The position numbers and the translations under genes are program-made. Of a stretch of DNA of 64,000 nt, positions 24,216 to 60,632 are shown piece after piece. The stretch lies in IMG/VR virus record IMGVR_UViG_3300042549_005931, positions 62,001 to 126,000 of that record; one strand, given 5' to 3'. The notes beneath the pieces are model-generated. The model searched no databases. It was not told the DNA's origin and saw only the letters and a program-made list of their open reading frames with translations. Numbering within the stretch: position 1 is the stretch's first letter; the number at the start of each line of letters is the position of its first letter.

Positions 24216-24890
24216 CTATTCGTCATAAAGTGAATTTAAATTACTATTTTTCATATACTTGGCTCTATTAATTTTACCAAGACTTTCTGTAATAGCATCC
24301 AATTCTTTTTGTAATTTTTCATTTAGCCCTTTTAGACGAATAATTTCAGTTTCGTCTATTTTAACGATTTCTTTTATAACTTCAACAGGTACTTCTTTGA
24401 TAACCTCTTTGATTACTTCGATTGGTACTTCTTTAATAACTTCAATAGGAACCTCCTTTATTACTTCAACCGGTACCTCTTTGATTATTGTTTTGGTTTT
24501 CGATTTACCCTGTACTTCTTTTATAACTTCAACCTCGATAGGAACTTCTTTTATTATTTCCTTAATGACCTCGACTTCAATGGGAACTTCTTTGATGACT
24601 TCCTTAATAACCTCGACCTGTACTTCTCTAATAACTTCCCTAATAACCTCAACTGGTACTTCCACAAGCTTTTCAACTGTGACTTCAACGATTTTTTCGA
24701 CTTCTTTGATGATTTCTTTTTCAATTGTTACCTCCTTTCCTTTTATATGTGATGGAGTCTCACCATACTTTAAAAGTGTGAAACCCCTGTTAAATGTTTC
24801 TTTAGCTTTCTTATCTACGTCTTGAATGTTATTTAATTCACAATATTGTATGAATTCTTTATCCAAGGTTAAGGTGTACTTCTTTACCAT
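24216..24890 (-). CDS. Protein with (VP)IEVIKE repeats and C-terminal coiled coil
   Basis: Many EVIKEV(P) units between about 24350 and 24730. Confidence 0.75.
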   Translation of the reverse strand: MVKKYTLTLDKEFIQYCELNNIQDVDKKAKETFNRGFTLLKYGETPSHIKGKEVTIEKEIIKEVEKIVEVTVEKLVEVPVEVIREVIREVQVEVIKEVIKEVPIEVEVIKEIIKEVPIEVEVIKEVQGKSKTKTIIKEVPVEVIKEVPIEVIKEVPIEVIKEVIKEVPVEVIKEIVKIDETEIIRLKGLNEKLQKELDAITESLGKINRAKYMKNSNLNSLYDE

Positions 24891-25677
24891 CCTCTATATC
24901 GGTTATATCTTTTATTTCAAAATGGAGAAATGGTTGTTCATTTGGTAAATCGTGAAATGTATATCCATCAGTCTCTACATTATATATACCATAACCATGA
25001 TGTTTCACCGTCTCACCAAAATTTTGTTGAATAAGACTTCCCGGCATTACCGCCTTTCCACCTTCAGGTAATGTAAATGTTTGTCTCTTATGAATGTCAC
25101 CACATAATAATAAATCCAAACCAACAAAGTTTAATCTATCATAAGCATCTTCAAACTCAAATCCCATATCCGTAGATAATCCTTGAATTGGTCCGTGGAA
25201 TAAACCTACATGAAATTTACCTTCTTCCTTCTCGTACTCAGGTTTTACATTATGTTGATACAATGAATAAACAACCCAATTGATATTCTCGTCAGGATAT
25301 ACACCACTATCTTTATAATATGTGATTGGTTCATCATATAATAGTTCAACAATTGGTGTGATACTATCTAAACGTTGTGTATTGTTCTCTAAGAAGTCGT
25401 GGTTACCCGGTATGATAACAACCCTACCAAACTCACCTAATTGTTTTAGGAACCAACTTGTTAACATCAATTGTTCATTGGAGATATTAATTTTTTGATG
25501 TGCAATATCACCCGCAACAACAATACGAATGTTTCCCCAACCAAGACCTTCATCCACCCAACCTTTATATTGGACTTTTAGTTCTTCAATTAATCTTTCA
25601 AATTGTTTTTTATACAATTCATGATATTGAAATGTTCTAATATGGATATCGGCAATGTGTACTATTCTTTTTATCAT
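24859..25677 (-). CDS. sbcD: SbcD/Mre11 (T4 gp47-like) metallophosphoesterase nuclease
   Basis: ADIH, AGD, PGNHD, FHG, GDIH, PGSL.QQNFGE. Confidence 0.9.
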   Translation of the reverse strand: MIKRIVHIADIHIRTFQYHELYKKQFERLIEELKVQYKGWVDEGLGWGNIRIVVAGDIAHQKINISNEQLMLTSWFLKQLGEFGRVVIIPGNHDFLENNTQRLDSITPIVELLYDEPITYYKDSGVYPDENINWVVYSLYQHNVKPEYEKEEGKFHVGLFHGPIQGLSTDMGFEFEDAYDRLNFVGLDLLLCGDIHKRQTFTLPEGGKAVMPGSLIQQNFGETVKHHGYGIYNVETDGYTFHDLPNEQPFLHFEIKDITDIEDGKEVHLNLG

Positions 25678-26531
25678 CGTTTTAAATATTTTTTTAAATC
25701 CATAGTTAAGATTGTGTCACTTATTTCTTTTGGTACTCTGAATTCTTCAAATGTACCATTTTCCTTTAAAAGAACAATAACACTACCCATTAATTTTGTT
25801 TTATCAAATTTGGTACCTTGTAACATTTTTAAAATCAATCTACCGTATAGTGGTAATTGTAAGTAATAGTGACCCAAGGCATTATCATGATAATTACCAA
25901 ATGGTGGATACAATCTACCAGTGTAATATTGAACTTCAAAGTTCTTTGGTTTATTAGTTTTCCAATCTGTGATAACTAAACCGTAATCAGTTTTTTGTCT
26001 GTTCATCATCAACCATACCTTATCGGGTTGACCGGTATATCCTTCTTCAGGGTCACCTAATACCATCTCAGTATCTAATAATACACCACCACGTTCCAAC
26101 ATTAAATCAAGAAACTCTTTACCTGCACCAATCATCGCATCACTCTTACGTTGTTGTTCCTCATTGATATCAAATATTGGTTGTCTCACATTTTTGTAGT
26201 TACCAAATCTATCAATGGTATCGGTTTCTAATTCAAAGTGAACACGACTACCCATATTGGTTGATAAATCACCGGCTTGTTTCCATTCCGCTAACAATTC
26301 TTTTGCACCTTCAGGGTCACCTTTACACATCTGTAATGCCTTACCTTCTGAATCAAAGTGTTTATGGAACTTGGATATTAGTCTTGAAACTGACGGGAAA
26401 TTACTTTTAATTTCACCGTTAAGGTCTCTCATATAATAAATGTGGTCTTCCTCAATAAAGGACAACTCTAATTGTTTCCTTTTTTCCTCCAACGTGTCTC
26501 TCATCTCTAACGAGATATCATATAAATTCAT
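25674..26531 (-). CDS. PD-(D/E)XK (RecB/Cas4-like) exonuclease
   Basis: PSVS, GSRVH, GQPDKVW, ITDWKT, YYLQLPLY. Confidence 0.8.
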   Translation of the reverse strand: MNLYDISLEMRDTLEEKRKQLELSFIEEDHIYYMRDLNGEIKSNFPSVSRLISKFHKHFDSEGKALQMCKGDPEGAKELLAEWKQAGDLSTNMGSRVHFELETDTIDRFGNYKNVRQPIFDINEEQQRKSDAMIGAGKEFLDLMLERGGVLLDTEMVLGDPEEGYTGQPDKVWLMMNRQKTDYGLVITDWKTNKPKNFEVQYYTGRLYPPFGNYHDNALGHYYLQLPLYGRLILKMLQGTKFDKTKLMGSVIVLLKENGTFEEFRVPKEISDTILTMDLKKYLKR

Positions 26532-26532
26532 A

Positions 26533-27477
26533 TTAATCTAATTTAATTTCTTTATAACCACTTAAATCACCAGCCAAATCTGCAATGTCTTTATCACCCT
26601 CCAATTTAATGATGTTAACTCGACCCATTAACTTACCACAATTAATTCTATGATAAAGTCTTTCAGCATCGTTCCACGCATCAGGGTCCAAGACAATAGT
26701 GAGTTCCCCCTTTGCATCATCGTATAACTTATAAAAAAGGTGGTCTGACATAAATTTACCCAACATTGGTATTGAGTTGGGGATAAATATGCTATCGAAA
26801 GCACCTTCAACGATGTATATTTTTTCATTCCATTTAACTAATTTCTCATTGAAAATAATAATCTCCTTTTGTACCTCGGGATTTTTATACTTCAATTTAG
26901 TGTATGATAGGTATGACCTTGCAATAAAATAATTTAAATAACCTTCCTCATTGTAAGATGGAATAATAATTCTATTTGCAAAGTCTCCTTCGTAACAAAA
27001 TCCAATGTTATATCTCTCTAACATTTCATCTGTAATATTTCTTTTCTTAATATAAGCCCACGCTTGTTTGAATTGTGATGTTAACCTCAATCCTCGACTT
27101 GCGTCTTTAAATAAGATAAACTCCTTTGGTAATTTTACATTTTTATAGACTCGTTTTGGTGCTTCACCATCCTCATCAGGTCTCAATATGATATATTTCT
27201 TGAGTTGTTTAGGATTACCGTGTTGTTTTATTAACTTATATAACGTACCATGAGTTCCGTGAGTCTCAGAACACGACCAACATTTAAAAACACTTTCTTT
27301 GTAGTTGATTTCAAGGTTTCCTTTCCCATCTCCGTGGTCAAGTTCCTTAATATCATATGAACAAACAGGACAATCAAAAGATATTTGTCCTTTGTAATCG
27401 TTGTGGAGTTTAGGTTCCCCTAAAATGTCCTCAAGGATATCAATTACCGGTGAATAATCTACTTTTTGGTCAGTCAT
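26533..27477 (-). CDS. dnaG: DNA primase (Zn ribbon + TOPRIM)
   Basis: CPVC...CWSC, RIIIP, KYKNP, VEGAFD, LDPDA. Start moved to ATG 27477 because the longer TTG frame crosses a terminator hairpin. Confidence 0.88.
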   Translation of the reverse strand: MTDQKVDYSPVIDILEDILGEPKLHNDYKGQISFDCPVCSYDIKELDHGDGKGNLEINYKESVFKCWSCSETHGTHGTLYKLIKQHGNPKQLKKYIILRPDEDGEAPKRVYKNVKLPKEFILFKDASRGLRLTSQFKQAWAYIKKRNITDEMLERYNIGFCYEGDFANRIIIPSYNEEGYLNYFIARSYLSYTKLKYKNPEVQKEIIIFNEKLVKWNEKIYIVEGAFDSIFIPNSIPMLGKFMSDHLFYKLYDDAKGELTIVLDPDAWNDAERLYHRINCGKLMGRVNIIKLEGDKDIADLAGDLSGYKEIKLD

Positions 27478-27521
27478 ACTCGAAAGGTAAGGAAAATATT
27501 CGAGAAAAAAAAATTGAGCAT

Positions 27522-27593
27522 AAAAAAAGAGAGCCGAACACCACCCCGACTCTCTACCAACCAAGAATGTATTTCTACATTCCCGACCTACAT
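27522..27593 (-). ncRNA. Candidate small structured RNA or attenuator with its own promoter and terminator
   Basis: TATTTAT boxes at 27595-27608; hairpin GGUCGGGAAUGUA-GAAA-UACAUUCUUGGUU; terminator AGAGAGUCGG-GGUGGUGU-UCGGCUCUCU-U6; all stem mismatches are G-U wobbles on this strand. Confidence 0.65.
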
Positions 27594-27629
27594 TAATAAA
27601 TATAAATAAAAGAATTTAAAAAACAAAGC

Positions 27630-28244
27630 CTACTTCGTATTTTTTTCAGTTTCTTTTATCATATTTACATATCCTATCACACAACACGCAGCATCTGCCA
27701 TGTCGTAGTTCTCTTTCTTTAAAGCTCCTGTCTTTCCGTATAACCAATTAATGTCAGGACAAACCTCATTAACGTGTTCCCATATAACATGTTTTTTATC
27801 GATGTCTTTTGGGTATCCACCAAACAAAACATTACGACCTTTGTCATTTGGTCCAACTAAATCAGGAAAAGCGTATTTTCTTGAGTTGTATGTTGAAATA
27901 AATGTTGGTAAGATTCCTAATGCGTCATAACATACTTTAAGAATTAAAGTGTTGTAACGTAACAATGTACCAATTGTGTAAATGTTATTAGATTGAAGTA
28001 ATGGTTCTTCTATAATGACACGGGTGATACCCATTCCTTTATAATTTTCGATGTGTGTCTTAAACGCATCAGCCTTCTTAATTAATTCTTCGATTTTATC
28101 TTCGGGTTGTGGTTTAATTTTTGGGGAAAAGTGTGTTAACTCCAATAATTTTGACCCTGAGATATCAAATAACGCAAACCCAATTGTTTTGGTGCTGATA
28201 TCTAAACCAAGAATTTTAGCCGACTCAAGTATTTTTTTGCTCAT
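27630..28244 (-). CDS. ruvC: RuvC-like Holliday junction resolvase
   Basis: ILGLDIST..IG, VIIEEP, YDMADA: D/E/D/D catalytic set. Confidence 0.8.
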   Translation of the reverse strand: MSKKILESAKILGLDISTKTIGFALFDISGSKLLELTHFSPKIKPQPEDKIEELIKKADAFKTHIENYKGMGITRVIIEEPLLQSNNIYTIGTLLRYNTLILKVCYDALGILPTFISTYNSRKYAFPDLVGPNDKGRNVLFGGYPKDIDKKHVIWEHVNEVCPDINWLYGKTGALKKENYDMADAACCVIGYVNMIKETEKNTK

Positions 28245-28283
28245 GTAAACTATAATAAATAATTTAACATGAAATGTAAAGTC

Positions 28284-30227
28284 TTAGAAATCTAACTGTA
28301 CATCAATTGTTTGGTCACCAGTTCTTTCTAAAGGTTCAGACATCTTAGCCATTATTAATGTTTCTTTGTTTGAATTTAATAATGCCACCTCAGTTATCAT
28401 TGGATTACCTGATTGATGAGTTGGGTTTACTGATGTTGTGAACTTATCTGCCGGTAAATTTGCTCTAAATGTCAATGTTTGTATTTCAGTACTTCTAACT
28501 ACATTAACACTACCGGGGAATGGTTGTTCATCACCAAAATATGGACCTGAAGACGTAGTAAAATCACTTGTCATGAAGTCACCTAAATTAAATGAACTTG
28601 TTGCACTTGATACATCACTTTCATTTATTGTAAATGTTTTGTTCGATAATTCTGTTGATTCAATTAATCCCGCACCATTTAATGTGATACCAGTTTGTTT
28701 ATAATAACTCCAAGTGTCCGAATCAGGATACTCACCATTATTTGTTATTTGGAATAATAAATAAAATTCATTTGCTATGTGTCCATTAATTGTGTTACCT
28801 GTAGTTGTTTGTAAGTATTGGAATTCATCACTACCAAATTTAACTGAAACACTGTGTGGTGTTGTTGAACCTGTTAATTTAGTGTAGTAGTTACAAGGTA
28901 AACTATTAGTATTTGTATCTCCCGAATAACTTAACATATATGTAATCCACATAGTTTTACCAGTGGTTAAATCAGTTATTGGGTCATTGGTAATAATTGC
29001 ACTTACCTTTGGTGCCGGTAATGTGAACTTTCTATTTGATTTATAATCTAAAGCCGCAACGATTTCTTCATCATCAAATACAATTACTTGTTGATTGTAG
29101 AATATTTTACCTACTCTCACATCTTGCTCGTCAAGTAAATCTCTATATTTCAAAACAAATCTTGAATTGTATGTAGAAACCATTTCTTTATCTGTAAGAC
29201 CCATATGGAATATTTCACCAACAGTTGAACCTGTTGGATTTCTATGGTACAATAAGAATGGTATGTTTATTTGGAAATACTCTTCATCAGATAAGTCAGA
29301 TGCGTTTGGTGATGTAAATCCTGTACTTGTACTTATGTGGTCATCGTATTTAAAGAATCTATTTGGGTCAACGTTATCACCATTTTTTGAATAATGAATA
29401 ATTGCAATTGCCTTTTGTTCTTCAGGTGTTATTGTTATTAATTCATCAACAGTATTTGTAATGGTGGTACCTGTATTATATGTTTGACCTTCAGATAATT
29501 TGTATCCAAAAAATTCTTTAGTTCCTACATAACCATTGCTTGCATAACCAGTGATACTTCTATCTGTGTTACCTAAACCAATTGGTTTTTGGTCCCAAAC
29601 TACATTTAATGTCCAAGGGTTATGTTGTTCGGTTGTGTCTGTCGGTACAGGGTTTTCAAACTCATCATCATTTTGAATTACAACAACATTAGTACTTGGT
29701 AATCTTGGAACCTCTCTATCTAATGTTATTGATGTTGAGCCAGTTGATACTACTTTATAGACATAACTATTAGTTTTACCTGTAATTAAATCATCGTCTA
29801 ATTTATTTGCATTTAATGCCAATGTAATGAAACTACCAGTTGCATAATTTGAACCGGCACCAACTGTAATTGTATCAGTGTTACCAACAAATGAACTAAC
29901 CGTTTCATAACCTGATTTAATATATGAACTTGATACAAATCCCGCAGGTCCCATAACATTTGAACATTCTGTCATTTCCATCAATGAAACAGGGATACCA
30001 TATGGTGAACTACCCGAAACATAAGAAAGTGGGTATTTTACATTACCATAATCATCAAATGGTGCCATTACTATTTGACCGGTGGTTGAATCCGTGTATG
30101 AATATTCTGAATCACCTACAGCAAAGTGTGTAATCACAAAATTACCATTTGCAATACTTTCTCTACCCTTTTGTGTAAGTCTCGTGGCTATTGTAAAACC
30201 TTTATAATTTGTATCTAAAAAACTCAT
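28284..30227 (-). CDS. Baseplate/tail-associated structural protein
   Basis: LTQKGRE.IA.G...ITHFAVGD N-terminus and ITEVALLN....LIMAK C-terminus as in tail-collar-type proteins; TATTTATA at 30232-30239. Confidence 0.6.
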   Translation of the reverse strand: MSFLDTNYKGFTIATRLTQKGRESIANGNFVITHFAVGDSEYSYTDSTTGQIVMAPFDDYGNVKYPLSYVSGSSPYGIPVSLMEMTECSNVMGPAGFVSSSYIKSGYETVSSFVGNTDTITVGAGSNYATGSFITLALNANKLDDDLITGKTNSYVYKVVSTGSTSITLDREVPRLPSTNVVVIQNDDEFENPVPTDTTEQHNPWTLNVVWDQKPIGLGNTDRSITGYASNGYVGTKEFFGYKLSEGQTYNTGTTITNTVDELITITPEEQKAIAIIHYSKNGDNVDPNRFFKYDDHISTSTGFTSPNASDLSDEEYFQINIPFLLYHRNPTGSTVGEIFHMGLTDKEMVSTYNSRFVLKYRDLLDEQDVRVGKIFYNQQVIVFDDEEIVAALDYKSNRKFTLPAPKVSAIITNDPITDLTTGKTMWITYMLSYSGDTNTNSLPCNYYTKLTGSTTPHSVSVKFGSDEFQYLQTTTGNTINGHIANEFYLLFQITNNGEYPDSDTWSYYKQTGITLNGAGLIESTELSNKTFTINESDVSSATSSFNLGDFMTSDFTTSSGPYFGDEQPFPGSVNVVRSTEIQTLTFRANLPADKFTTSVNPTHQSGNPMITEVALLNSNKETLIMAKMSEPLERTGDQTIDVQLDF

Positions 30228-30253
30228 ATATTATAAATATTAATTTAATTTAA

Positions 30254-34810: not shown

Positions 34811-37800
34811 TTACACCGTTATTATATATGCAGTTGTTTCTGTACAACCATTATTATCGGTAACTTTAACATAATAATAACCTGCCGTAACACTACTAAA
34901 TGTTACATTTGATGTATCAGTTAATGTGTCAACTACACTACCTCCACCAACTTCGTATGGTGCTGAGAAATCTTGATACAATTCAAATGTTTTACCACCT
35001 GAAGCACCACCTGAAACGGATGCATAAATTTGGTCAAATGCAGTTTTTTGTGCAAATATTCCAAGTGCACTTGGTTGTGTTATTGTACGAGAATATTCTT
35101 CAACTTTACCCGCACTATCTTTAATATAAACAGTGTACGTACCTGCAGGTACATTATATGTTGTTGATGAGGTCCAATTTGTATATGTGGTATAAACACT
35201 ACTTAATTTAGTTTGGAAAGTTCCGCCACTTCCACCTGTTACGTTAGTGATAGTTATCGTACCGTCATTTCCATTACACGCCGCATTTGCACTTGATACT
35301 GTTGCGGTTATACAAATTGATTCATATAATGTTACGGTTTTGTCAGTATAAACACTAGTATTACAATTAGGACTTGCATTGTAAACCCTTACAGTGTATA
35401 CTTGACTACCGCCTAAACCGTTTATATATCCAGTATCAATTGTTGCATTTCCACTACCATTTATAGTTCCATCAGGTGATGTACAACCATTATTTGTACA
35501 TGAGAATGTTGCACCATTACAATATCTATAAAAGTCACCAGGGTTTCCACCTGTAATTAAAAGTTTACCAGTCGTACTTGTACCATTCGTAACACAATTT
35601 GGTTGTGTTGTACCCAAATTAAATATTGGGTATGATAAGATTGTTATATCGGTTGTTGTTGCGGCAGCACTTCCGCCAGTACCATTTAATACCACATAGA
35701 ATGATTCACTACCTTCAGATAATCCGTCAGATGAAATTGTTAATGTAAATGTACCCGTATTACTATTAATTGTAACATTTCCACTTGTTGCACTTGAGAA
35801 ATCGGCAGATGATGTTGTTCCATTATAACCAACATACCAACCAAGTGACGTTCCATTTCCAATATCTGTTGTATTAACTGTCAATGTTATAGTATCACCC
35901 TCAGCAACAGTATATGCCGATGATGTGATGCCATATGTTGGTTCCGCAACATTATTAACACTAATTGTAAATTGTTTTTCTGTGTATAGTCCACCTTGGT
36001 CAGTTGAACGAACTCTAATTGAGTATGACGATTTGGTTTCATAATCAAAAACAACTGAATTTCTAAGTGAGCTTCCTGAAATATTAAAGCTACTATTATC
36101 TCCACTACCTGTTCCCGCAACTAATGTATATGTAAATGAGTTACCTGAATCGGGGTCAATTGTTTGGAAGGTACCAATTGATGTGTTTATTGATGTGTTT
36201 TCATTTTGTGAACTATTACTTAATATAATATCTGTCGGTGTTTCATTAACATTATTTACATATATCGTAAAATCTTTCTCGTAATATAAACCACCTCCGT
36301 CTGTTGAACGAATTCTAATTGAGTAAGATGATTTTGATTCATAGTTAAATGTTCCGTTAGTGAATAAATCATCTCCCGTAATTGCAAAACTACCATTATC
36401 CACACCACCTGATGCAAATGAATATGTAAATATATTAGTACCATCAGGGTCAGTTGTTGAGAACGTTCCAACAAATGTTGTTGAACTTGAATTTTCATTA
36501 ACATATACATTAGTTAAACTAATATCTGTTGGCGATTCATTTACATTATTAACACCAATTGTAAATTGTTTTTCGTTATATAAACCTCCTTGGTCTGTTG
36601 AGCGAACTCTAATCATATACGCGGTTTTAGACTCGTAGTTAAAAACTATAGAATTTCTAAGAGCGTTTCCTGAAATATTGAAACTACTATTATCATCACT
36701 ACCTGTTCCCGCAACTAACGTATAAGTGAATGTGTTACCCACATCAGGGTCACTTGTTGAGAAAGTACCAATTGTAGTATTAATCGATGTATTTTCATTT
36801 TGTGAGGTATTACTTAAATTAATATCTGATGGTGTTTCATTAACATTATTAACAAATATTGTAAATTGAGCTTCTACATATAATCCACCTTGGTCTGTTG
36901 AGCGAACTCTAATTGTATATGATGATTTAGTTTCATAATCCAAAAATACAGTATTTCTTAGTGAGCTTCCTGAAATATCAAAACTACCATTATCTCCACT
37001 ACCAGTTCCTGTCACTAATGTATAAGTAAATGTGTTACTTGCATCAGGGTCAGTTGTTGAGAAGGTTCCAATTGTTGTATATTGTGCTGAACCTTCATTA
37101 ATATTGTTAGTACTTAACGATATTGACGCTGGTGTTTCGTTCACATTACTAATGGTTATAGTGAATATTTTTTCAAAAAATTGTCCAAGTGAATTGGTTG
37201 AGCGAACTCTAATTGAGTACGATGACTTAGCCTCAAAATTATAAACTTCAGAACTTCTTAACTGTGTTCCTGATATGTTAAAACTACCATTATCACCACT
37301 ACCCGTTCCTGTAACTAATGTATATGTATACGTCTCAGTAATTGGACTTGCGGTTTGTGATGAGAATGTTCCAATAACATAATTTATTGAACTATTTTCA
37401 GGTATTGATTCACTCGATAATGAAATACCATTTGGTGGGTATGGTGACGGTGTCGGTGTTTGTGTTGGTGTTCTTGTTGGCGTAACAGTATTTGTTGGCG
37501 TTTGTGTTCTCGTTGGCGTAACAGTATTTGTAGGCGTAACAGTATTTGTAGGTGTAACAGTGTTTGTTGGTGTTTGTGTTGGTGTTCTCGTTGGTGTAAC
37601 AGTATTTGTTGGTGTTTGTGTTGGTGTTCTCGTTGGTGTAAAAGTATTTGTTGGTGTTTGTGTTGTTGTTGGTGTAAACGTATTTGTAGGTGTAACAGTG
37701 TTTGTTGGTGTTTGTGTTGGTGTTCTTGTTGGCGTAACAGTATTTGTTGGTGTTTGTGTTGTTGTTGGTGTAAACGTATTTGTAGGTGTAACAGTGTTTG

Positions 37801-40800
37801 TTGGTGTGGTCGATGGCGTGAAAGTAGGTGTTGGTGTAACAGTATTTGTTGGTGTTTGTGTTCTCGTTGGTGTTACAGTTGGGGTAACCGTATTTGTTGG
37901 TGTTACAGTACTTGTTTGGGTTGGAGTTGGGGTTGGTGTAGGTGTTACACACGGTGCGGTTGATGTAACTTGAGAGTTACCACTAACATCGGTAATAGTT
38001 AATACATTACCACTACCGTCACTTTTTCTAATAAAAAACGTGGAAACTCCTGTAGTACCTAAAGTTGTATTTAATTCAGCAATAGTCCAAGCATCGGTAC
38101 CATCTGGTGACTGATATAAAAATTCATTTAATTCCAATGGTTGGTCAGCGTCATAAATTAAAATTTGTGTACTCGGTGAATAACAAACCGTATATGAATC
38201 TGTTGAAATATAGTAATATGCCCCATCAAGTGGATTAGACGTTGATGGTGTTATAGTAGGTGTAACGGTACTTGTAGGTGTAGGTGTTTGTGTTCTTGTT
38301 GGCGTAACAGTATTTGTTGGTGTCACCGTATTTGTTGGTGTTTGTGTTCTCGTTGGTGTAACAGTGTTTGTTGGTGTAGTTGATGGTGTAAAAGTAGGTG
38401 TTGGTGTAACAGTTGGGGTCGTAGTTGTAGTTGGTGTTGGTGTTGGAGTACGCGTAGGTGCGACATAACAACCACCAAGTGATAATATTGAAATTTGTGC
38501 AATGTTATTTTGGTCTTCAACTCTAGTTGACCCCTTTAACGTACCATAAAATACCCCCGTATTAATTGTATATATACCCTGAGATACTTCTTCATATATC
38601 GTTGTATATGTTTCATCAAAATATTCAATAAATCCACCTGAATTAACAATATACGTGATACCGGTATATGCATCACAAATTGTTGGTGGAACACATTCAC
38701 TATATGTACCTATATTAAATGTAACCCTATTAAATGGATTTGGGCTATTAAATGATGTAATTGTTACATTTGATATATCATTAAAATTCAAATCGGGTAA
38801 TGGTATAAATTTTTCACTTTCATCACTTAAAAAATTAACCGTTACCGTGGAATATAATACACTACTACCCGTATATATATTTGCATTAAAATTAACTCCA
38901 ACATATGAAACTGTTTGTCCGCTTTGCGAATCCTTTATTATAAATTTAACACCATTATCACTTAAATCACTACAAATTTCTTCTGAATCAATAACTAAAA
39001 TACTTGATTGAAAATAACTAAAAATTGTACTATCGAATGGATAAATTTCACGGTATAAACTATCGGCAGCTTCGGTGTAATCGTATGTTGATAGGTTATC
39101 ATCATACAAATAAAATGTTTCTTGGGTTGATAAATTATTTATAAATCCTCTAACAACGAGTGGGTCACTATAGAACGATGATTCATTCCAATTATTAATT
39201 ATATTGATGTTGGTATTACCGTCAAATATTAAATTATCTCGATTATTCGATGTTGCAAACCAAGCACTTGTATAATTTAAGTTTGTGTTTGAAACACTGT
39301 ACGTTCCGGTAGTTCCGGAAACTGAAGAATCCCCACTATTTACCCATAATAAAATATCCGTAACTATACCATTTGTTAATTCATAAATTTTTCTATAATA
39401 TGTTTCATCGATAACCGAATAATATCCATTTAACACACTATAAAATCCATCTCTTTCATAATATAATTTTTTACCAATTGTAACACCTTGTGTATCTGAA
39501 TTATCATAAAATAATGTATAAATATTTTGTATATTTTCTACTTTTATTTCATGTGTGAAATATGTGATAATACTGGTTACACCTGGTTTTGATTTAAATG
39601 GTAATTCTCCCGTTGTTCCAGTTAAAGATATTAAATAATTATTTGCTTGACTGTCAGCATCTTCAATTGAAATTGTTGATTCTATTAATCCACGAGGAAC
39701 AACAATTTTTTTAGGTATAAAGACATTTAAATCTCCAATTTTTTTAGTGGTAGTTGTTAATTCAAATGTTATTTCATTATTAGTATATCCACTAGCAGAT
39801 TTTTCAGGAACACCCATAGTATAACAAAGTAATATTTCACTATTATACTGTGTATCATAAAAAACCGGTGATGAATCGGGAACTGTTGATATTTTAAATA
39901 AATCTAAACTATATTCACGTACTGTATTTAAAGCATATGATACCTCTCTGGACGTTATGACTCCTGTATTTGAAATTGTATAAAAATAATCTCCGTCACA
40001 TAATGTGGTATAATAATTTTCATATGGAGTAGAACTATGTTCATTACCTGTAGTAAAATCGGCGTGTTTATAAATTGTTATTCCAGGTTTTAAATATGGC
40101 GTTGTTGTATATCGTCTTCTTAATACTTTAGAATCTTCAAACACATCTTTATTTGTTCCAAAAATACTATACAAAAATCCTAATAAAGCACCAACAATTG
40201 GTATTGAATTTAAAAAGCTAAAAATACCGAGTGCTAGAAATGCATCAGCTATATTGTCATATGTTGTTTTTGACTTAAATCCCTCACTATCACCCCCATA
40301 AAGAAAATATGACGCAATTGCTTTAACAACAGCATGTCTACTCCCCGGTATTGGAATATGTTTTTCCTCATTATAATTGTAAATTGTAAAAGCATTATTA
40401 CTGGCTAAATGTGGTGTTGAATTTGACACACCAAGAAAATATGAATAAACTATTGGTTGTGTTAAAGTACTTGGGGTAATAGTTTTAGTTATCGTTGCAT
40501 TAAATTCCGGAAGTTTAAAATCTATCGCACTCCAAAATGCCCTATCATATGAAGGTGTAATTGTTAAATCGGTGGTAAAAACATTTGTTTGTGGTATGAA
40601 TGTAAAATCTTTAGGCCCGTTATATATTGGTGTTGCTTTTAGAGGTTTAAGGAACTCATTTTTAAAATTATAATCAACTTTTGTTCCGTAAGTTCTTTTT
40701 ATGTCACCCAATCCAAGTTTATAAATGAGATTTGTATTATATATTGCGCCATAATAATATGGTAGGCATCCCCATTCAAAAAATGGGTCATTAAATACAA

Positions 40801-42145
40801 CACAATTTGACGTAAAGGTAAAGGAGGTTGGCCAATTCTCTATCAACACAGGTGTGTATACTCGTGTGATTACTTTTGGGTTATAGTATGAATCGTATGG
40901 TGAATATGGGTGAAGTCCAAGTCTATAATTATAAATTTCGGTACCACAAGGAGCATCAATTTCATAGGGTGTATTTGGGGGGTCAGCACAATCATCCCTT
41001 GTATTTATTGGATATTCAGTTGCCACTCTAAGATGAACCATTCCGGTTATGGTTACTATACTAACAGTTTCATTCGCTTCAAATAGTGTATCAAACCTTA
41101 CTTTATTAAAATCACAACCACCACCAACACTAAGTTGTCCAGGTTCATCTAAATTTAGACCATCACCAACTGTAAAAAAAACTCGACGAGTTCTTTGCGG
41201 AGTTGTTGGAATTTTATTTACACTTATTTGAACTAATCTATGATTTGTTGGATAATGAAAAATATAATCGACAATTTGATATTTGTATCCATTTGTTTTA
41301 ACGTTAGTGGCATTTCGATAATATGGATGTGGAACCATTTTACAAGGTATTCCACCACCACTAAAAGATTCATCCCTACATTGGTTTGAAAATCTATATT
41401 CGGTACTACATGTATAAGCCACCATGGTGTGTGATACATTATTATATACATAATAAAAAATGATAGGTGTGGCAACACTAGCCCTCAACTTTGAGTTATC
41501 GTAATGTGTTTTAGGTACAAAAGTGTCACCGTTAGATACTTCATTAGCCAATAAATCATCATAATACCACCTACTATTTATGTAACTGTTATTTGAAGAA
41601 CTATCTGTTTTTTCTTTATATAATGTGACAACTTGAGGACATGTTGTACATACATAATCATTATTAGTATATCCACTACAAAATTCTTCAAAGTATATCG
41701 GAGGGTCACAATCAAATTTTATTTTAAAACTTCCTGAAGTACCACCCGTGGTCTTAAAATCTATGGTAAAATAAATGTCATTTGTGTTATCGACATCTAC
41801 TGAAAAATGAAAGTACTTATTAACTGCAGTTGGTAAAGTATTAATGTCAATTGTTGAAATTACCAAATCTTTACCATTAACTAATTGTTTTATGTAAATA
41901 ATGGTATTTGCTCCACCCATACTTATGGGTGTCATTGTTAATCTAATTAATTTGCGTAAAGAAGGTGGGGTTGTTGATACGTCTTTTTTTAAATCTTTTA
42001 ATTCATTGTATTTTAAAAAAAAAGTGGTGCCTGACACATGTAATCCTTGAGTGCTCCATGTTAAAGTTTTTTCAACACCACATTCATTTGCTATGGGTGT
42101 TGAACTATCAATAGGTACCGGACAATTAAAATTAAATTCACTCAT
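34811..42145 (-). CDS. Giant adhesin-like protein: Thr/Pro stalks, five cadherin-like repeats, Calx-beta-like and SprB-like modules
   Basis: Five units of EN...IGTFS..DPD...FTY.LV...DN.SF.I.G..L......YE.KSSY.IRVRSTD.GG...EK.FTI.VNNVNE.P; VAEGD...[10 protein letters not shown]; CNGNDGTI...GG...YTVYIKD. Confidence 0.8.
37445..37950 (-). repeat. Thr/Pro coding repeat ([12 protein letters not shown])
   Basis: Degenerate 18-bp units gttggtgtaacagtattt; a second block lies at about 38240-38460. Confidence 0.9.
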
Positions 42146-42464: not shown

Positions 42465-45400
42465 TTAAAGTAATTCATCATATATTATTCTAATATCATC
42501 TCCACTTGAGGTTGCACTACCAAATATACCCGGTGTTAAGAAATTTTCGTATGCACTAATACCTCTCTTTCTTTCAATACCATTACAATCAATCCAGAAT
42601 ATATTTCCACCCGTATAAGACGCGTTAAACGATATCATAACACAATCTCCAATTTGACCCGCATAATTGGTACATGTAGTACCACTACTTGTGATTGTAA
42701 ATGTTGCTTGATTGTCAAGAATTGAAGGTGATTTCAACGATTCAACTATAATACATTCAGAAATTGTGTATGTACCAAGAGGTGCAAAGAATGATTTTTG
42801 TCCATTTTCAGTATTATAGATAATGTAACCATCATCAATTATGTTTAATGTAACATTCTCTCTAAACGTTTCGGTACCACCTGTCACAACCTCATTACAA
42901 ATTAATGTAGTTGCACATGATGTTGTTGTTTTAATATCAAATGGTTGGAAAGTTGTAGTATTTTTTGAATAAACCACAATATCTAAAACTTTCGAATCGT
43001 CAGTTCCAATAAATCCAACTGTTTTTGTTATATTATTACTTCCATTATATAAAACAAAAATTTCACCAACTTTCTCAGCGTAATTACCAACAAACACTTC
43101 TGTTGTTGAATTATATGTTATTGCACTAATTGTTACCTCATAATTACCATAAGAATTGTCTAATATGAACGTATTATTAAGTATGGTCGTACCCGCATTT
43201 AATACAGTATTAGTCACATTACCTTCATTACATGCCGCAGTTCTTAATGTATTACCTGAACAATCACCTACTAATTCAACTAATCTTGAAGTTATATTTT
43301 GATAATGTGAACCACCGCTATAAAGTACATCAAAATATGGTTCCGTTAATGAACAGTTATCATAACAAATATCACTTGGATACGTACCCGCAACTTGATA
43401 ATCAATAGATGCTATGGTTGTAGTTCCACATGGGTAATAATATAACGTAACTTTTTTATCATCACTTACATCAATATCATTTTGAGTAATTATAACATCA
43501 TAGCTAGTACATCCCGTACATTCTCTTGGTGTGGTTGTTAATGTAGGTGTAGGTGTGTTTGTAGGTGTAATCGATGGTGTGAAAGAAGGCGTAACAGTAT
43601 TTGTGGGTGTAATCGATGGTGTAAAAGTAGGTGTTGCCGTTACGGTTACTGTTTGTGTTAAAGTAACTGTTGGTGTAACAGTATTTGTTGCAGTAACACT
43701 CGGTGTGATACTGTTAGTTGGTGTAATGGTATTAGTTGGTGTAATAGTATTAGTTGGTGTAATAGTATTGGTTGGTGTAATAGTATTGGTTGGTGTAATA
43801 GTATTGGTTGGTGTAACTGTTGGCGTTTCAGTAACAGTTGGTGTGTTTGTGTTAGTTGGTGTAACGGTACTTGTAGGTGTAACAGTTGGTGTCTCAGTAA
43901 CACTTGGTGTAACGGTATTTGTAGGTGTAACAGTGTTTGTTGGTGTTTGCGTTTGTGTTTCAGTAACACTTGGTGTGATTGTGTTAGTTGGTGTGATTGA
44001 TGGGGTAACCGTAGGTGTTTCAGTATTTGTAGGTGTTGGTGTATGAGTTAAATCAGTTGTTGACGTAATTGATGGTGTTGGTGTCGTTGTTGGTGTAACA
44101 GTTTCGGTAGCTGTTGGTGTAACAGTATTCGTTGGTGTAACAGTTGGTGTAACAGTATTTGTCGCCGTAACAGTTGATGTAACAGTATTTGTTGGTGTAA
44201 CAGTTTCGGTAATAGTTGGGGTTACTGTATTCGTTGGTGTAACTGTTGGGGTTTCAGTAACTGTAGAAGTAACTGTATTTGTTGGTGTAATTGTTGGCGT
44301 TTCAGTAACAGTTGGGGTAATACTATTTGTTGGTGTAATTGTTGGCGTTTCAGTAACACTTGGAGTAATTGTGTTTGTCGGCGTAACTGTTATCGTTTCG
44401 GTAACAGTTGGAGTAACAGTATTTGTTGGTGTAATTGTTGGCGTTTCAGTAATAGTTGAGGTAACAGTATTTGTTGGTGTAACTGTTGGAGTTTCAGTAA
44501 CACTTGGGGTAACTGTATTTGTTGGTGTGGTGGTGTTGGTAGTAGTTGGGGTAACAGTATTTGTCGGTGTAATTGTTGGGGTTTCAGTAACTGTAGAAGT
44601 AACGGTATTTGTTGGTGTTACAGTTTCGGTAACTGTATTTGTTGGTGTAATTGAAGGTGTAGACGTAGTTGTTGGTGTAACAGTTTCGGTAACTGTTGGA
44701 GTAACACTATTTGTTGGTGTAATTGTTGGCGTTTCAGTAACTGTTGATGTGGGTGTTGGAGATAAACCAGTGGTTGCACTAACACTTGGAGTAATACTAT
44801 TTGTTGGTGTAATTGTTGGCGTTTCAGTAACAGTTGGTGTAATACTATTTGTTGGTGTAACAGTTTCGGTAACTGTTGGAGTAACACTATTTGTTGGTGT
44901 AATAGTATTGGTTGGTGTAACTGTAGGTGTTTCAGTTACCGATGGGGTAATACTATTTGTTGGCGTTATCGTAGGTGTCTCAGTAATAGTTGGTGTAACG
45001 CTCGATGTTACAGTGTTGGTTGGTGTGGGTGTATGTGTTAAATCAGGTGTTAAAGTAACTGTTGCAGTAACGGTGTTTGTAGGTGTTACAGTTGGGGTTT
45101 CAGAATTTGTCGGTGTGATACTTGGTGTAACTGTTGTAGTTTCGGTATTTGTAGGTGTTGTCGTCATTGTTGACGTAACAGTTTCAGTAACACTTGGTGT
45201 AACTGTATTCGTTGGGGTTAAGGTAGGTGTTTCTGTATTTGTTGGAGTTACACTTGGTGTGATTGTGTTTGTAGGTGTTACGGTTTCAGTAACAGTTGGG
45301 GTAATAGTATTTGTCGGTGTAACTGTTGGTGTTTCAGTATTTGTAGGTGTTGGTGTAACGGTATTACTTGGTGTAACACTTGATGTGACAGTATTTGTAG

Positions 45401-47888
45401 GTGTTGGTGTATGAGTTAAATCAGGTGTTAATGTAACACTTGGTGTAATCGTATTAGTTGGTGTAACACTTGATGTAATCGTATTAGTTGGTGTAACACT
45501 TGATGTTACAGTGTTAGTAGGTGTGATACTTAAAGTAGGTGTTATTGATGGTGTTACAGTATTTGTAGGTGTAGCAGTTGGCGTCTCAGTAACGGTTGGT
45601 GTTTGAGTAACTGTTTGTGTTGGTGTTTCAGTTATTGATGTTGTAATGGTTGGCGTAACACTATTTGTTGGAGTTACACTTGGTGTAATACTGTTTGTTG
45701 GGGTTACACTTGGCGTAACACTATTTGTTGGTGTTTGAGACGGTACAAAATTCTCTGTTAGAGTTGGCGTGTTTGTTGGTGTAACACTATTTGTTGGAGT
45801 AGTGGTTGTGGTTGGTGTAATCGTCTTAGTAGGTGTTACCGTTGGTGTTGGTGTTTTAGTTAAATTAGGTGTCAATGTAACACTTGGTGTAACCGTTTTT
45901 GTTGGTGTGGCGGTTTGTGTTGGAGTTTTAGTTAAATTAGGTGTTAATGTAACACTCGGTGTAACTGTTCTTGTTGGAGTTACCGTGTTGGTTGGTGTTA
46001 CAGTTGGTGTAGTTGTTTTTGTCGCAGTAACACTAGGTGTAACTGTTCTTGTTGGTGTAGCACTTGGAACAATTGTTCTCGTTGGTGTAACACTCGGTGT
46101 AACTGTTTTTGTTGGTGTAATTGACTTAGTAATCGATGGTGTTACGGTATTTGTTGGTGTTAAAGTTACTGTTGGTGTGATAGTACTTGTTGGAGTCACC
46201 GTTGGTGTTGGTGTTGGCGTTTTGGTTAAATAATTTGGACATTGAACATTAAAATTCCATAATGTTTCAGGGTCAGTGCTAGCATTTACAACAACTTTTA
46301 CGGTATTTTCAACAGAGGTTGAACCTGTTATTAAAATGTTACTAATACCTGAACCGGTATATGTTCCAATTAAATTATTTATTGGGTAATAAACACTAAA
46401 TGAATCATTAATAGTATATGAGTTGTATTCAAATATAGATTCACCAGAATAAACATTACAATTTATAAAATATGTTTGTCCCGTACCCGGCCCACCATAA
46501 ACAGGAGCGTCACATAGATAATCTCTTGTTGGTGTAACAGATGGTGTTGCAGTTTTAGTAGGTGTAACAGATGGTGTCACAGTTTTAGTTGGTGTTACTG
46601 TTGGAGTTGTTGTTTGTGTTGTCGTTGGTGTTGGTGAATTTGTAGGTGTTGGAGTTGGTGTAAATGGAATAATACATTCAACCATAAACGACCATAATGT
46701 TTCAACTTCACCACTATCCACCGGATTAACAACAACTTTCACTACATCCGATGTACCATCAAGAGATAATGTATATGTCGATACACCCGATAATGATGTG
46801 AATCCTGTTAAATATGTGTTTATAGGGTAGTAAATGTCAACAGAATCAGATATCGTAAAACCACTGAAACTAAATACTGATGTACCAGGACTATTACCAA
46901 CATTGATATAATTCTCTAATGGCATTGGTGAATATCCACCCGAGTAAATAGTGTTACATTCTGTACCTTCAACGATTGGTATGATTTCAACATCGATTTC
47001 AAACGCACAAAGTATGGTTGGCGTCATTGTTGGTGTTGGTGTTAATGTTGGTTCCATGGTCACCGTAGGTGATACCGTCGGGGTTACACTTAATGTTGGG
47101 GTTGGTGTAAGTCTTATAGTTTTTGTTGGGGTTGGTGTTACCGTATTTGTTGGAGTTACTGTTGCAGTTATAGATGGGGTAACTGTATTTGTAGGTGTTA
47201 CGGTATTTGTTGGTGTTGGAGTTTGTGTTACAAACGTTTCACAATCAATCATCATCTCTTTAGACAACGAATTGTTAGTCCAAGGTGAATCTAATTTAAT
47301 TGTTACGTGTTTTGTTCCAACCGTATCATATGATTTATATGCTTTGTAACAATTAACACCACTACAAACACCTTCAACACCAATAGGGGATGTTGTTCCA
47401 TCACCCCAATCTACTGTAAATATAATTTCACCAACACCAGCAATATTTTTTAAATTAGTTGTGTTAGTTACCGTTACATTATTACAATCAACTTCGTAAA
47501 TAAAGTTCGCATTTATTTGATTTTGTGTTGATTCAACACCAACACTACCATCAAATGCCAACATGACACCATATTCATCGGCCGTAGATTCTAAAAATAA
47601 AGGTATTTGTTGTGTGTCGTATATTTGAGAATTAATTTCTGAGGGTGTTCCACTTATTAAATTCCAAGTACCGCTTGTTGGTTCTCCCCATCTGTAGTAA
47701 CCACTATCTTCTGTTCCACCTGAAACATTAAAAACAACTAAACCCACACTAACTTGACTGTCAGTTAAACCGGACCAATCAATGGTGGATGTGTAAGTAT
47801 CGTCAGCATACCATGTTTGACCGGTCAAAGAAACCAATCTAACATTCGCAATGTTTTTACGTCTAAGGGTATACTTATTTTTCTTCAT
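42465..47888 (-). CDS. Giant mucin-like protein: PKD-like N-terminal region, Cys-bracketed beta modules, ~900-aa Thr/Pro stalk
   Basis: FTVDWGDGT; duplicated C...DS...YYPIN...VKVVVN....ETLW.F.V.C module; long (T-x)n tract. Confidence 0.8.
43530..46230 (-). repeat. ~2.7-kb Thr/Pro low-complexity coding repeat
   Basis: Continuous [12 protein letters not shown]-type units, G+T-rich on the + strand. Confidence 0.95.
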
Positions 47889-59649: not shown

Positions 59650-59654
59650 ATTTT

Positions 59655-60632
59655 TTAAAAATCTAAATCTCCACTAAAAGCATCTTCAATACTTTCGTCA
59701 CTTTTATTATTCACTCCTGCCTTTTGATATTCCGCAACACGTTTCTCAAAGAAGTTTGTTTTACCTTGTAATGCGATGTTCTGCATAAAATCGAAAGGAT
59801 TTTCGGAATTGTAAACCTTTGAACATCCTAATGCCATTAATAATCTATCCGTAACGAACTCAAGATATTGTGACATTAAATCGGCATTCATACCAATCAA
59901 ACGAACCGGTAACGCTTCCAAAATAAATTCTTTCTCAATTGCCAATGCACTTACAATGATTTCTTTAATCTGAGACTCAGATAATTTATTTTCAATGTGA
60001 TTGTTGAATAAGTGACAAGCAAAGTCACAATGCATCCCTTCGTCACGAGAAATTAACTCATTAGAGAAAGTTAAACCCGGCATTAAACCACGTTTCTTTA
60101 ACCAGAAGATTGAACAGAATGAACCTGAAAAGAAGATACCTTCAACCGCAGCAAACGCAATTAAACGTTCTGTAAATGTTCCATTTTCAATCCATCTTAA
60201 TGCCCATTCAGCTTTCTTTTTGATTGCCGGAATAGTTTCAATAGCATTGAATAGGTTTAATTGTTCTGTCTTATCTTTAATGTAAGAATCAATTAACAAC
60301 GAATATGTTTCACTATGGATATTCTCCATCATGATTTGGAAACCATAAAACATTTTTGCTTCAGTGTATTGTACTTCATTCACAAAATTTAATGCGATGT
60401 TTTCATTAACAATACCATCTGACGCAGCAAAGAATGCTAAGATGTGTTTAACAAAGTGTTTCTCATCATCATTCAATTTGTTATCCCAATCTTGAATGTC
60501 TTGAGCCAAATCGATTTCCTCAGCAGTCCAAAAACATGCTTCTTGTTGTTTATAGTATTTCCAAATATCGTTATGTTCGATAGGAAAGAGGACAAACCGT
60601 CCTGGGTTGTCTTGTAATATTTTTTCAGTCAT
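59655..60632 (-). CDS. nrdB: Ribonucleoside-diphosphate reductase beta subunit
   Basis: [49 protein letters not shown]. Confidence 0.97.

Follow-up and report, generated by a model that had tools for sequence, protein, structure and literature searches.

Comparative analysis of a clade of freshwater jumbo phages supports the conclusion that the intergenic region between a RuvC-like resolvase gene and a DnaG-type primase gene specifies a structured RNA that is real and self-contained and is more than a terminator alone. The element is probably a small RNA of a new family, transcribed independently and acting in trans. Elements of this kind are known; this RNA family, its motifs and the phage clade that carries it are new. 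An independent small RNA had been the favored reading in the initial annotation, and it fits the comparative data best, the element having its own promoter, its own terminator and an autonomous cassette. The analysis established the structure and conservation of the element, the anatomy of its cassette and its autonomy.

Genomic Context of the Element

The window analyzed here is a stretch of 64,000 nucleotides that corresponds to positions 62001-126000 of a single-contig IMG/VR virus record from lake water. The record is 269,133 bp long, with 32% G+C and an estimated completeness of 81%. Searches for nucleotide relatives of the source phage among GenBank phages, near and distant, gave no match, and its protein-level relatives there are remote (≤34% identity).

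The element lies between its upstream neighbor, the RuvC-like resolvase gene (27630..28244, minus strand; 204 aa), and its downstream neighbor, the primase gene (26533..27477, minus strand). These are followed by an exonuclease gene (25674-26531, minus strand) and an SbcD-like phosphoesterase gene (24859-25677, minus strand). The ruvC, primase, nuclease and sbcD surroundings that had been named from the sequence were borne out, with a strong match for the primase (phrog_47, E 1.4e-40; PF08275, E 3e-6); the RuvC-like assignment is weak (phrog_159, E 4.4e-6), as is the corresponding PDB match. Upstream of the RuvC-like gene throughout the clade stands a gene for a 647-aa protein (window 28284-30227, minus strand), the relatives of which are 647-771 aa long and 40-74% identical across the clade; this protein gave no match to Pfam or PHROG. 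Further along the minus strand are two very large open reading frames of 2444 and 1807 aa (window 34811-42145 and 42465-47888), each with an ortholog in just one of two complete relatives.

Structure of the Element

Re-reading of the minus strand at 27608..27522 confirmed exactly the letters reported earlier. The whole predicted small RNA, about 66-70 nt in length, occupies 27522..27591 (minus strand). A covariance model (R1) of the conserved two-hairpin RNA upstream of primase matched window positions 27520-27587 with a score of 74.6 bits (E 3e-16).

The first hairpin, P1, is the 13-bp helix with a GNRA loop that had been proposed (27588-27576 paired with 27571-27559; GAAA at 27575-27572). 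The 5' strand of its lower part is a conserved box (27582..27587, minus strand) that reads GTCGGG here and GACGGG in most relatives, and the 3' strand is contained in the segment CTTGGTTGGT (27556..27565, minus strand; UUURGUUGG(U) in relatives), which consists of the lower P1 3' strand plus the unpaired GG(U). Upper P1 (27566..27581, minus strand, including the tetraloop at 27572-27575) is a variable stem that covaries in the alignment described below. A GGT linker at 27558-27556 joins P1 to the second hairpin, P2, which is a terminator hairpin of 10 bp (27555-27546 paired with 27537-27528), as proposed, or of 10-11 bp by fold and scan. The P2 5' arm (27546..27555, minus strand) and 3' arm (27528..27537, minus strand) were both identified by the terminator scan and by compensatory changes; they enclose an 8-nt loop, GGTGGTGT (27538..27545, minus strand), which is N-GUGGUGU in relatives. 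In the scan itself, P2 was scored as 11 pairs with a 6-nt loop, followed by TTTTTTT. The U-tract directly after the hairpin comprises six T here (27522..27527, minus strand) and 5-9 U in relatives, so that a G+C-rich hairpin and an adjoining U-tract stand on the transcribed strand, as in an intrinsic terminator.

Direct reading also bore out the statement that seven pairs are non-Watson-Crick and that all of them are G.U on the minus strand, with five in P1 and two in P2. The minimum free energy of the element was -29.8 kcal/mol as compared with -13.85 ± 2.59 for dinucleotide shuffles (z = -6.16), and none of 200 such shuffles folded as well. The element forms a G+C-rich island inside an A+T-rich intergenic region. 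Its only open reading frame on the minus strand is ATG-TAG (27593-27588), as had been noted. An extension of the primase frame up to a TTG at 27564 was considered and rejected; it is not conserved, and across relatives the primase ATG lies anywhere from 27 to 51 nt downstream of the element, with no fixed frame.

The lineage of this window departs from its relatives in lower P1, where one 5' nucleotide is absent and A2 is replaced by U. The pairing is consequently shifted in register, and a G x R mismatch that is typical of the family is gone.

Conservation and Covariation among Relatives

An alignment of 53 distinct sequences (A1) was prepared with MAFFT. Both hairpins were predicted from it by RNAalifold, and compensatory changes were present in 14 of the 18 predicted pairs (our own structure contains 20 pairs). 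When the 20-pair structure was imposed on the alignment, 97.3% of the cells could pair as compared with 70.7% in shuffled alignments, and compensatory changes were counted in 14 of the 20 pairs. The covariation score was 0.690 against 0.184 in shuffles, none of 500 shuffles reached 0.690, and control structures in which the partners had been slid by 1-3 columns scored 0.08-0.23.

The changes are distributed unevenly along the RNA. The P2 stem varies freely, with double (compensatory) changes in 9 of its 10 pairs. Upper P1 differs between relatives in both sequence and length, and its pairs 7-37 to 11-32 show AU, GC, UA and CG exchanges. The P1 loop is of the GNRA type (GAAA, GUAA or GCAA), or UUAAAA on longer stems. 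The G.U pairs, together with the GNRA variants, indicate that selection acts on the RNA and on this strand only.

Three parts are near-invariant: lower P1, the GG(U) linker and the P2 loop N-GUGGUGU. Lower P1 places GACGGGA opposite UUURGUU, which yields in order G.U, A-U, C-G, G x purine, G.U, G.U and A-U; G1.U, C3-G, G5.U and G6.U are invariant in A1. Part of this apparent invariance is attributable to the way in which many of the sequences had been retrieved, namely by a pattern that required the three boxes. Conservation was therefore re-measured on 49 distinct upstream regions anchored by primase alone. The 5' box was present in 45 of these, the linker box in 44 and the GTGGTGT loop motif in 45. 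Exceptions were an A in place of G1, by which the G.U pair becomes A-U; a tandem G x A that replaces the G x R mismatch plus G.U (L355); the P2 loop variants GUUGGUGU and GUGGUGG; and two decayed copies, described below. The finding of only a conserved terminator hairpin in relatives, together with the lack of a discrete ∼70-nt transcript, had been named in advance as the outcome that would speak against an RNA element; P1 proved to be kept and covarying as well.

Promoters and Predicted Transcription Unit

A -10-like promoter box, TATATTTAT, is located at 27596..27604 (minus strand) and contains the genome-wide core TATTTAT. It was found 14-17 nt before G1, the first nucleotide of P1, in 49 of 52 distinct sequences. 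The remaining three carry TGTATAAT at the same position, which implies that the type of promoter has changed and its function has been kept. A -35-like hexamer, TTTGTT (27622..27627, minus strand; TTTACA or TTTACT in most relatives), stands 17 nt upstream of the -10-like box, and the same 17-nt spacing was observed in 22 of the 38 distinct relatives in which such a hexamer was found. From the spacing, transcription is predicted to start at 27589..27592 (minus strand), ∼7 nt after the -10 hexamer and 1-5 nt before P1.

The core TATTTAT(A) is enriched ∼10-fold upstream of open reading frames in the source genome. Genome-wide, copies of the box (A/G)TATTTAT(A/T) begin 11-30 nt upstream of ATGs, 12-13 nt being a common spacing. 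The starts of open reading frames are depleted of Shine-Dalgarno-like motifs (6/272 as compared with 25/272 at a control position). The spacing and the depletion together point to leaderless or short-leader mRNAs, and the phage probably infects a host that makes little use of Shine-Dalgarno sequences, for example a member of the Bacteroidota. The RNA thus sits where the start of a coding gene would sit, which is the basis for the predicted start 1-5 nt before P1. The box is frequently found directly after a terminator, for example at window 30228-30240 (minus strand), upstream of the 647-aa gene.

The primase gene has a promoter-like box of its own, as the initial annotation had claimed. In most relatives, this is a TATATT box that lies downstream of the U-tract and precedes the primase ATG by 6-9 nt, a leaderless spacing; the version in this window, AATATTTT (27493..27500, minus strand), is a poorer match than in most relatives. 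The element therefore combines a promoter of its own at a conserved distance with the lack of any conserved open reading frame, as is expected of a small-RNA gene.

Distribution, Autonomy and Loss

An IMG/VR search with the primase protein returned 30 loci with 69-100% amino acid identity, and the two-hairpin element was present upstream of primase in all 30. A search with a primase alignment yielded 404 relatives; among the best 80 of these, R1 detected exactly one copy upstream of primase in 78, with scores of 67.7-88.4 bits. Pattern scans gave at least 129 instances (at least 52 distinct sequences) in IMG/VR and at least 79 instances (at least 34 further distinct sequences) in metagenome contigs. 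Viral and metagenome contigs together thus hold more than 85 distinct sequences, and the RNA is kept in hundreds of related phages. An initial, loose pattern scan had returned 120 matches, of which two were genuine and the rest mostly due to chance.

R1 found a single copy in the 269-kb source genome. Two relatives of 324 and 336 kb, 97-100% complete, likewise have one strong copy apiece. The gene order RuvC-like gene, RNA, primase, exonuclease was observed wherever the contig was long enough, with occasional inserted genes. The family is confined to one clade of freshwater jumbo phages and to this fixed syntenic position. At the corresponding place, the remote relative Flavobacterium phage immuto has a plain terminator and no RNA, and LR756508, a 484-kb phage that is also a remote relative, has no intergenic region and no RNA.

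The insertions show that the cassette is a unit. In L029 and several other contigs, the RuvC-like gene and the RNA are separated by a UDP-glucose/GDP-mannose-dehydrogenase-like gene; in L112 and L509, a class-III aminotransferase gene stands between the RNA and primase; and L459 has insertions on both sides of the RNA. In all of these cases, the promoter-RNA-terminator cassette is intact. The genes that border it are auxiliary metabolic genes, for instance the dehydrogenase-like gene at L029:3021-3845 and the aminotransferase gene at L112:12218-13441 (PF00202, E 3e-69).

Two contigs contain decayed copies. In L360 (2880-2925), P1 is gone and the terminator is kept, its loop UGGUGGUG retaining the conserved motif; in L365 (2900-2970), part of the P1 3' strand and the linker remain, and the 5' half of P1 and the loop motif are missing. 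Both keep the RuvC-like gene, primase and exonuclease, and no relocated copy of the RNA was found in either fragment. Decay of the RNA while these three genes stay implies that, in at least one lineage, it is dispensable for primase expression and for replication, which argues against an essential cis element or origin. Because the ribonucleotide-reductase type is swapped in both contigs, they may be sisters, and the RNA may have been lost only once. In a comparison of the two for co-lost genes, which with two RNA-less contigs has low power, only the reductase swap and a 75-aa open reading frame differed. The window itself encodes a class Ia ribonucleotide reductase, named from sequence alone (alpha, 807 aa, and beta, 325 aa; 57226-60632, minus strand). 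In the RNA-less contigs, the alpha match had just 26-29% identity and beta was not found, which suggests a reductase of a different type.

Searches for Known Counterparts

The proposal that the element was undescribed was upheld by a search of Rfam 15 (4227 families), in which neither the element nor the whole window gave a match at gathering thresholds; the families covered include T-box, group II intron D5-D6, small ribozymes and tmRNA. The best match was McaS/IsrA (RF00115), which reached 21.9 bits against a gathering threshold of 42 (E 0.6) and involved the terminator part alone. ARAGORN detected no tRNA or tmRNA at the element, and nothing was found in the literature on this motif.

No host copy was found in the bacterial genomes searched. 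An exact-pattern scan of 185,579 species genomes produced 42 matches, all of which scored ≤20.7 bits with R1, and 151 Bacteroidia genomes contained only three partial matches of 27-30 bits. These three align mainly to the terminator part, and the two loci that were inspected are ordinary gene-end terminators.

Several specific identities were considered and set aside. A G-quadruplex switch (GGUUGG...GGUGG) is contradicted by the many relatives that have AGUUGG and by some that have only GUGGUGU. By inspection, the P2 loop has no complementarity to other conserved segments with which it might form a pseudoknot. As a candidate Chi-like DNA site, GGTGGTGT is frequent on both strands with no special pattern, and this frequency is expected from the use of GGT and GTT codons. 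The GACGGGA box presumably resembles helix 2a of Escherichia coli tmRNA; mimicry of that helix was rejected because the phage's own tmRNA lacks the box. Mimicry of Cas13b or other CRISPR repeats was dropped for want of a 3' CAAC. Pairing with an RNA-guided, TnpB-like RuvC protein was rejected on the grounds that the RuvC-like protein is just 204 aa long and that its gene can be parted from the RNA by other genes. A translational operator of primase is contradicted by the 27-51 nt between the hairpin and the ATG, by the promoter box in between and by the gene inserted there in L112.

Proposed Mode of Action

The comparative data are best described by the following minimal scheme. The phage promoter, consisting of the -35-like hexamer, a 17-nt spacer and TATATT(TAT), would start transcription 1-5 nt before P1, a position predicted from spacing, and P2 with its 7-9 U would end the RNA after about 65-78 nt. 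Since the intrinsic terminator is strong, the RNA is expected to build up as a discrete two-hairpin species. The P2 stem and upper P1 would serve as scaffolding, in which sequence and length are free and pairing alone is kept. The working surfaces would be the irregular lower P1, the unpaired GG(U) linker and the P2 apical loop N-GUGGUGU, and the RNA would most likely act in trans by binding a partner through them. P2 would also double as the terminator for transcription arriving from the upstream RuvC-like operon.

The partner is more likely to be a protein than an RNA, judging from the G.U pairs and the purine-purine mismatch, which are never "repaired" to Watson-Crick pairs. A helix with unrepaired pairs of this kind is typical of shape-specific recognition. 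Candidate protein partners include a phage replication or recombination factor and a host factor. The RNA is always found between the same two genes, and its role may be tied to the RuvC-like gene or to primase.

A cis-acting role is a possible, although unlikely, alternative and one of the two main rivals of the preferred reading. The element would then be a leader or attenuator from whose promoter the primase, exonuclease and sbcD genes are transcribed when a factor, bound to the GU-rich linker and loop, blocks termination; the RNA would be the 5' leader of the primase operon. Such an arrangement would suit the immediate adjacency of the element to the downstream primase gene in nearly all genomes, the pair of conserved single-stranded boxes on either side of the terminator 5' arm and the weakness of the primase gene's own promoter box in this lineage. 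It would also suit a 243-nt contig from a freshwater metatranscriptome (run X20; depth 2.3, 96% identical, covering 27580-27337), which starts 7 nt into the RNA, crosses the terminator and reaches 190 nt into primase. The start of this contig agrees weakly with the predicted transcription start, and its extent fits either terminator read-through by some molecules or carry-over of DNA. The expression data consist of assembled contigs of public runs, among which no discrete ∼70-nt transcript was seen, and libraries of this sort would not capture small RNAs. A second contig, of 161 nt, from a run of unknown type (X26) spans 27450-27610.

Attenuation should, however, leave a conserved antiterminator, and none was detected. 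The switch envisaged in the initial annotation, in which a 5' copy of GTCGGG pairs with the terminator 3' arm, was not sustained. The second copy of GTCGGG is real in this genome but is not kept in relatives, and over 53 sequences the pairing energy was -6.16 kcal/mol as compared with -6.34 for shuffled arms. The terminator arms vary freely and nothing upstream covaries with them, and no conserved, mutually exclusive antiterminator pairing of the kind that defines a riboswitch or attenuator was found in the 53 sequences. Furthermore, primase has its own TATATT box at leaderless spacing in most lineages, the element is not adjacent to primase in L112 and L509, where an aminotransferase gene intervenes, the terminator and primase persist in L360 and L365 without P1 or the loop, and a tract of 7-9 U after a G+C-rich stem predicts efficient termination. 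Primase in this lineage may nonetheless depend partly on read-through, given the poor match of its own box.

The other main rival, unlikely as well, is a trans-acting RNA that works by base pairing, with the linker UUGGUUGGU and the P2 loop GGUGGUGU as seeds for C/A-rich host sites (CCAAC, CCACC). Here the weak, G.U-rich lower P1 would open and expose the first seed, and the targets would be host mRNAs or other host RNAs. The element does offer two conserved segments of 7-9 nt that are unpaired or weakly paired and alike, and its architecture of a 5' hairpin, a single-stranded stretch, a terminator and a U-tail is that of many bacterial small RNAs. The host also appears to do without Shine-Dalgarno sequences, to judge from the 6 motifs at 272 phage open reading frames, and its start regions should for that reason be A/C-rich. 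The searches for targets did not support pairing, however. No 7-mer complements were found near real gene starts in the source phage, and a comparative ranking of duplexes over three phage genomes revealed no conserved complementary site; one top match lies in the upstream coding sequence and is conserved for that reason. The 5' ends of primase genes were not enriched for complementary sites. In addition, a seed in the 3' strand of lower P1 leaves the invariant 5' strand GACGGGA and the G x R mismatch unexplained.

It is very unlikely that the element is a terminator module alone, with P2 ending the upstream operon and P1 acting as a stabilizing or insulating hairpin that has no function of its own. 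P2 is indeed the sole minus-strand terminator that the scan found in 26000-29000, the scan found no terminator of its own for the RuvC-like gene before the RNA, a terminator followed by a promoter is the usual intergenic layout of the source genome, and the lineages that lack P1 or the loop keep the terminator. Nevertheless, terminators need neither a conserved 8-nt loop nor a conserved irregular 5' helix, nor a promoter of their own at a constant spacing that has persisted through a switch of promoter type, and the corresponding position in distant relatives holds either a plain terminator or nothing.

There is a slight chance that the RNA is a free-standing, trans-acting binder of the 3'-NCCA ends of tRNA or tmRNA. 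The conserved UGGU boxes, of which two are in the linker and one is in the P2 loop, are the feature that would make contact, and known RNAs bind tRNA 3'-NCCA ends in this manner through the UGGN bulge of T-boxes and the GGU of RNase P P15. Each conserved single-stranded box contains UGGU, and GGUGGU is common to the loop and the T-box consensus; in segments composed of G and U only, UGGU is expected by chance. The phage RNA differs from these binders in having no Stem I, specifier or antiterminator and no Rfam match, and it is not in cis to an aminoacyl-tRNA-related gene as T-boxes are. Were the reading correct, the RNA would allow a jumbo phage with 22 tRNAs and a tmRNA to sense, shield or sequester uncharged tRNA ends.

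A DNA-level element, such as a single-strand initiation signal or origin hairpin recognized by primase, or a primer or R-loop RNA, is highly improbable: the element adjoins primase, a G/T-rich structure is followed by an A+T-rich stretch and the promoter could supply a primer transcript, but the conserved G.U pairs would be weak as G.T in DNA and are confined to one strand, a promoter and a U-tract are what an RNA gene would have, no turn in GC skew was found at this position, at least one lineage has lost the element, and in others it is no longer next to primase.

Comparison with Known Systems

The preferred reading, an independent small RNA, places the element beside the terminator-ended small-RNA genes of bacteria and phages. 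It resembles them in that it is preceded by a promoter of its own, opens with a 5' hairpin followed by a short single-stranded stretch, ends in an intrinsic terminator with a U-tail, lacks an open reading frame and falls in the size class of about 70-100 nt. It differs from them in that its conserved parts include the apical loop of the terminator and a non-canonical helix. McaS/IsrA, a member of this class, shows no homology to the phage RNA, the near-match being due to the terminator alone.

In phage T4, the gene 43 hairpin, with its 8-nt loop, and the gp32 and RegA sites are translational operators of replication genes. They are read by protein rather than by base pairing and overlap the ribosome-binding site of the regulated mRNA. 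The phage RNA, too, is the neighbor of a replication gene and presents a hairpin whose 8-nt loop is sequence-specific; in contrast to the T4 operators, this hairpin is a terminator with its own promoter and lies 27-51 nt upstream of the ATG. The put antiterminator RNAs of HK022 are untranslated, ∼70 nt in length and composed of two hairpins, and are made directly after a phage promoter. The phage RNA shares the size, the two hairpins and the position directly after a phage promoter, whereas its second hairpin is a U-tract terminator, and neither similarity to put nor antitermination logic is apparent. Like the orphan structured RNA motifs that comparative genomics has revealed in metagenomes and phages and that are catalogued in Rfam, it is a G+C-rich intergenic island defined by covariation; it differs from them in belonging to none of the 4227 Rfam 15 families and in being restricted to one clade with fixed synteny.

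Lytic jumbo phages are rich in proteins of unknown function, and to our knowledge very few conserved non-coding RNAs have been defined in them. The RNA described here has the kind of covariation support that is normally required for a new RNA family, and it is common across lake metagenomes; primase relatives in IMG/VR number more than 400. If its partner is a host or phage protein, the RNA would be an instrument for taking over the host or controlling replication, in phages that probably infect bacteria without Shine-Dalgarno-based translation or Hfq-type small-RNA biology. The invariant helix of G.U, G.U and G x purine and the 8-nt loop provide precise mutational handles. By-products of the analysis are a covariance model and a promoter logic for the phage clade.

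Outside the window, the source genome carries its 22 tRNA genes in a cluster, together with the tmRNA gene, at genome positions 203660-215870. The tag encoded by this tmRNA is unusual, comprising 21 residues and ending in VAVA. A promoter box on the opposite strand at genome position 216039 is followed by ∼12.8 kb devoid of open reading frames on that strand.
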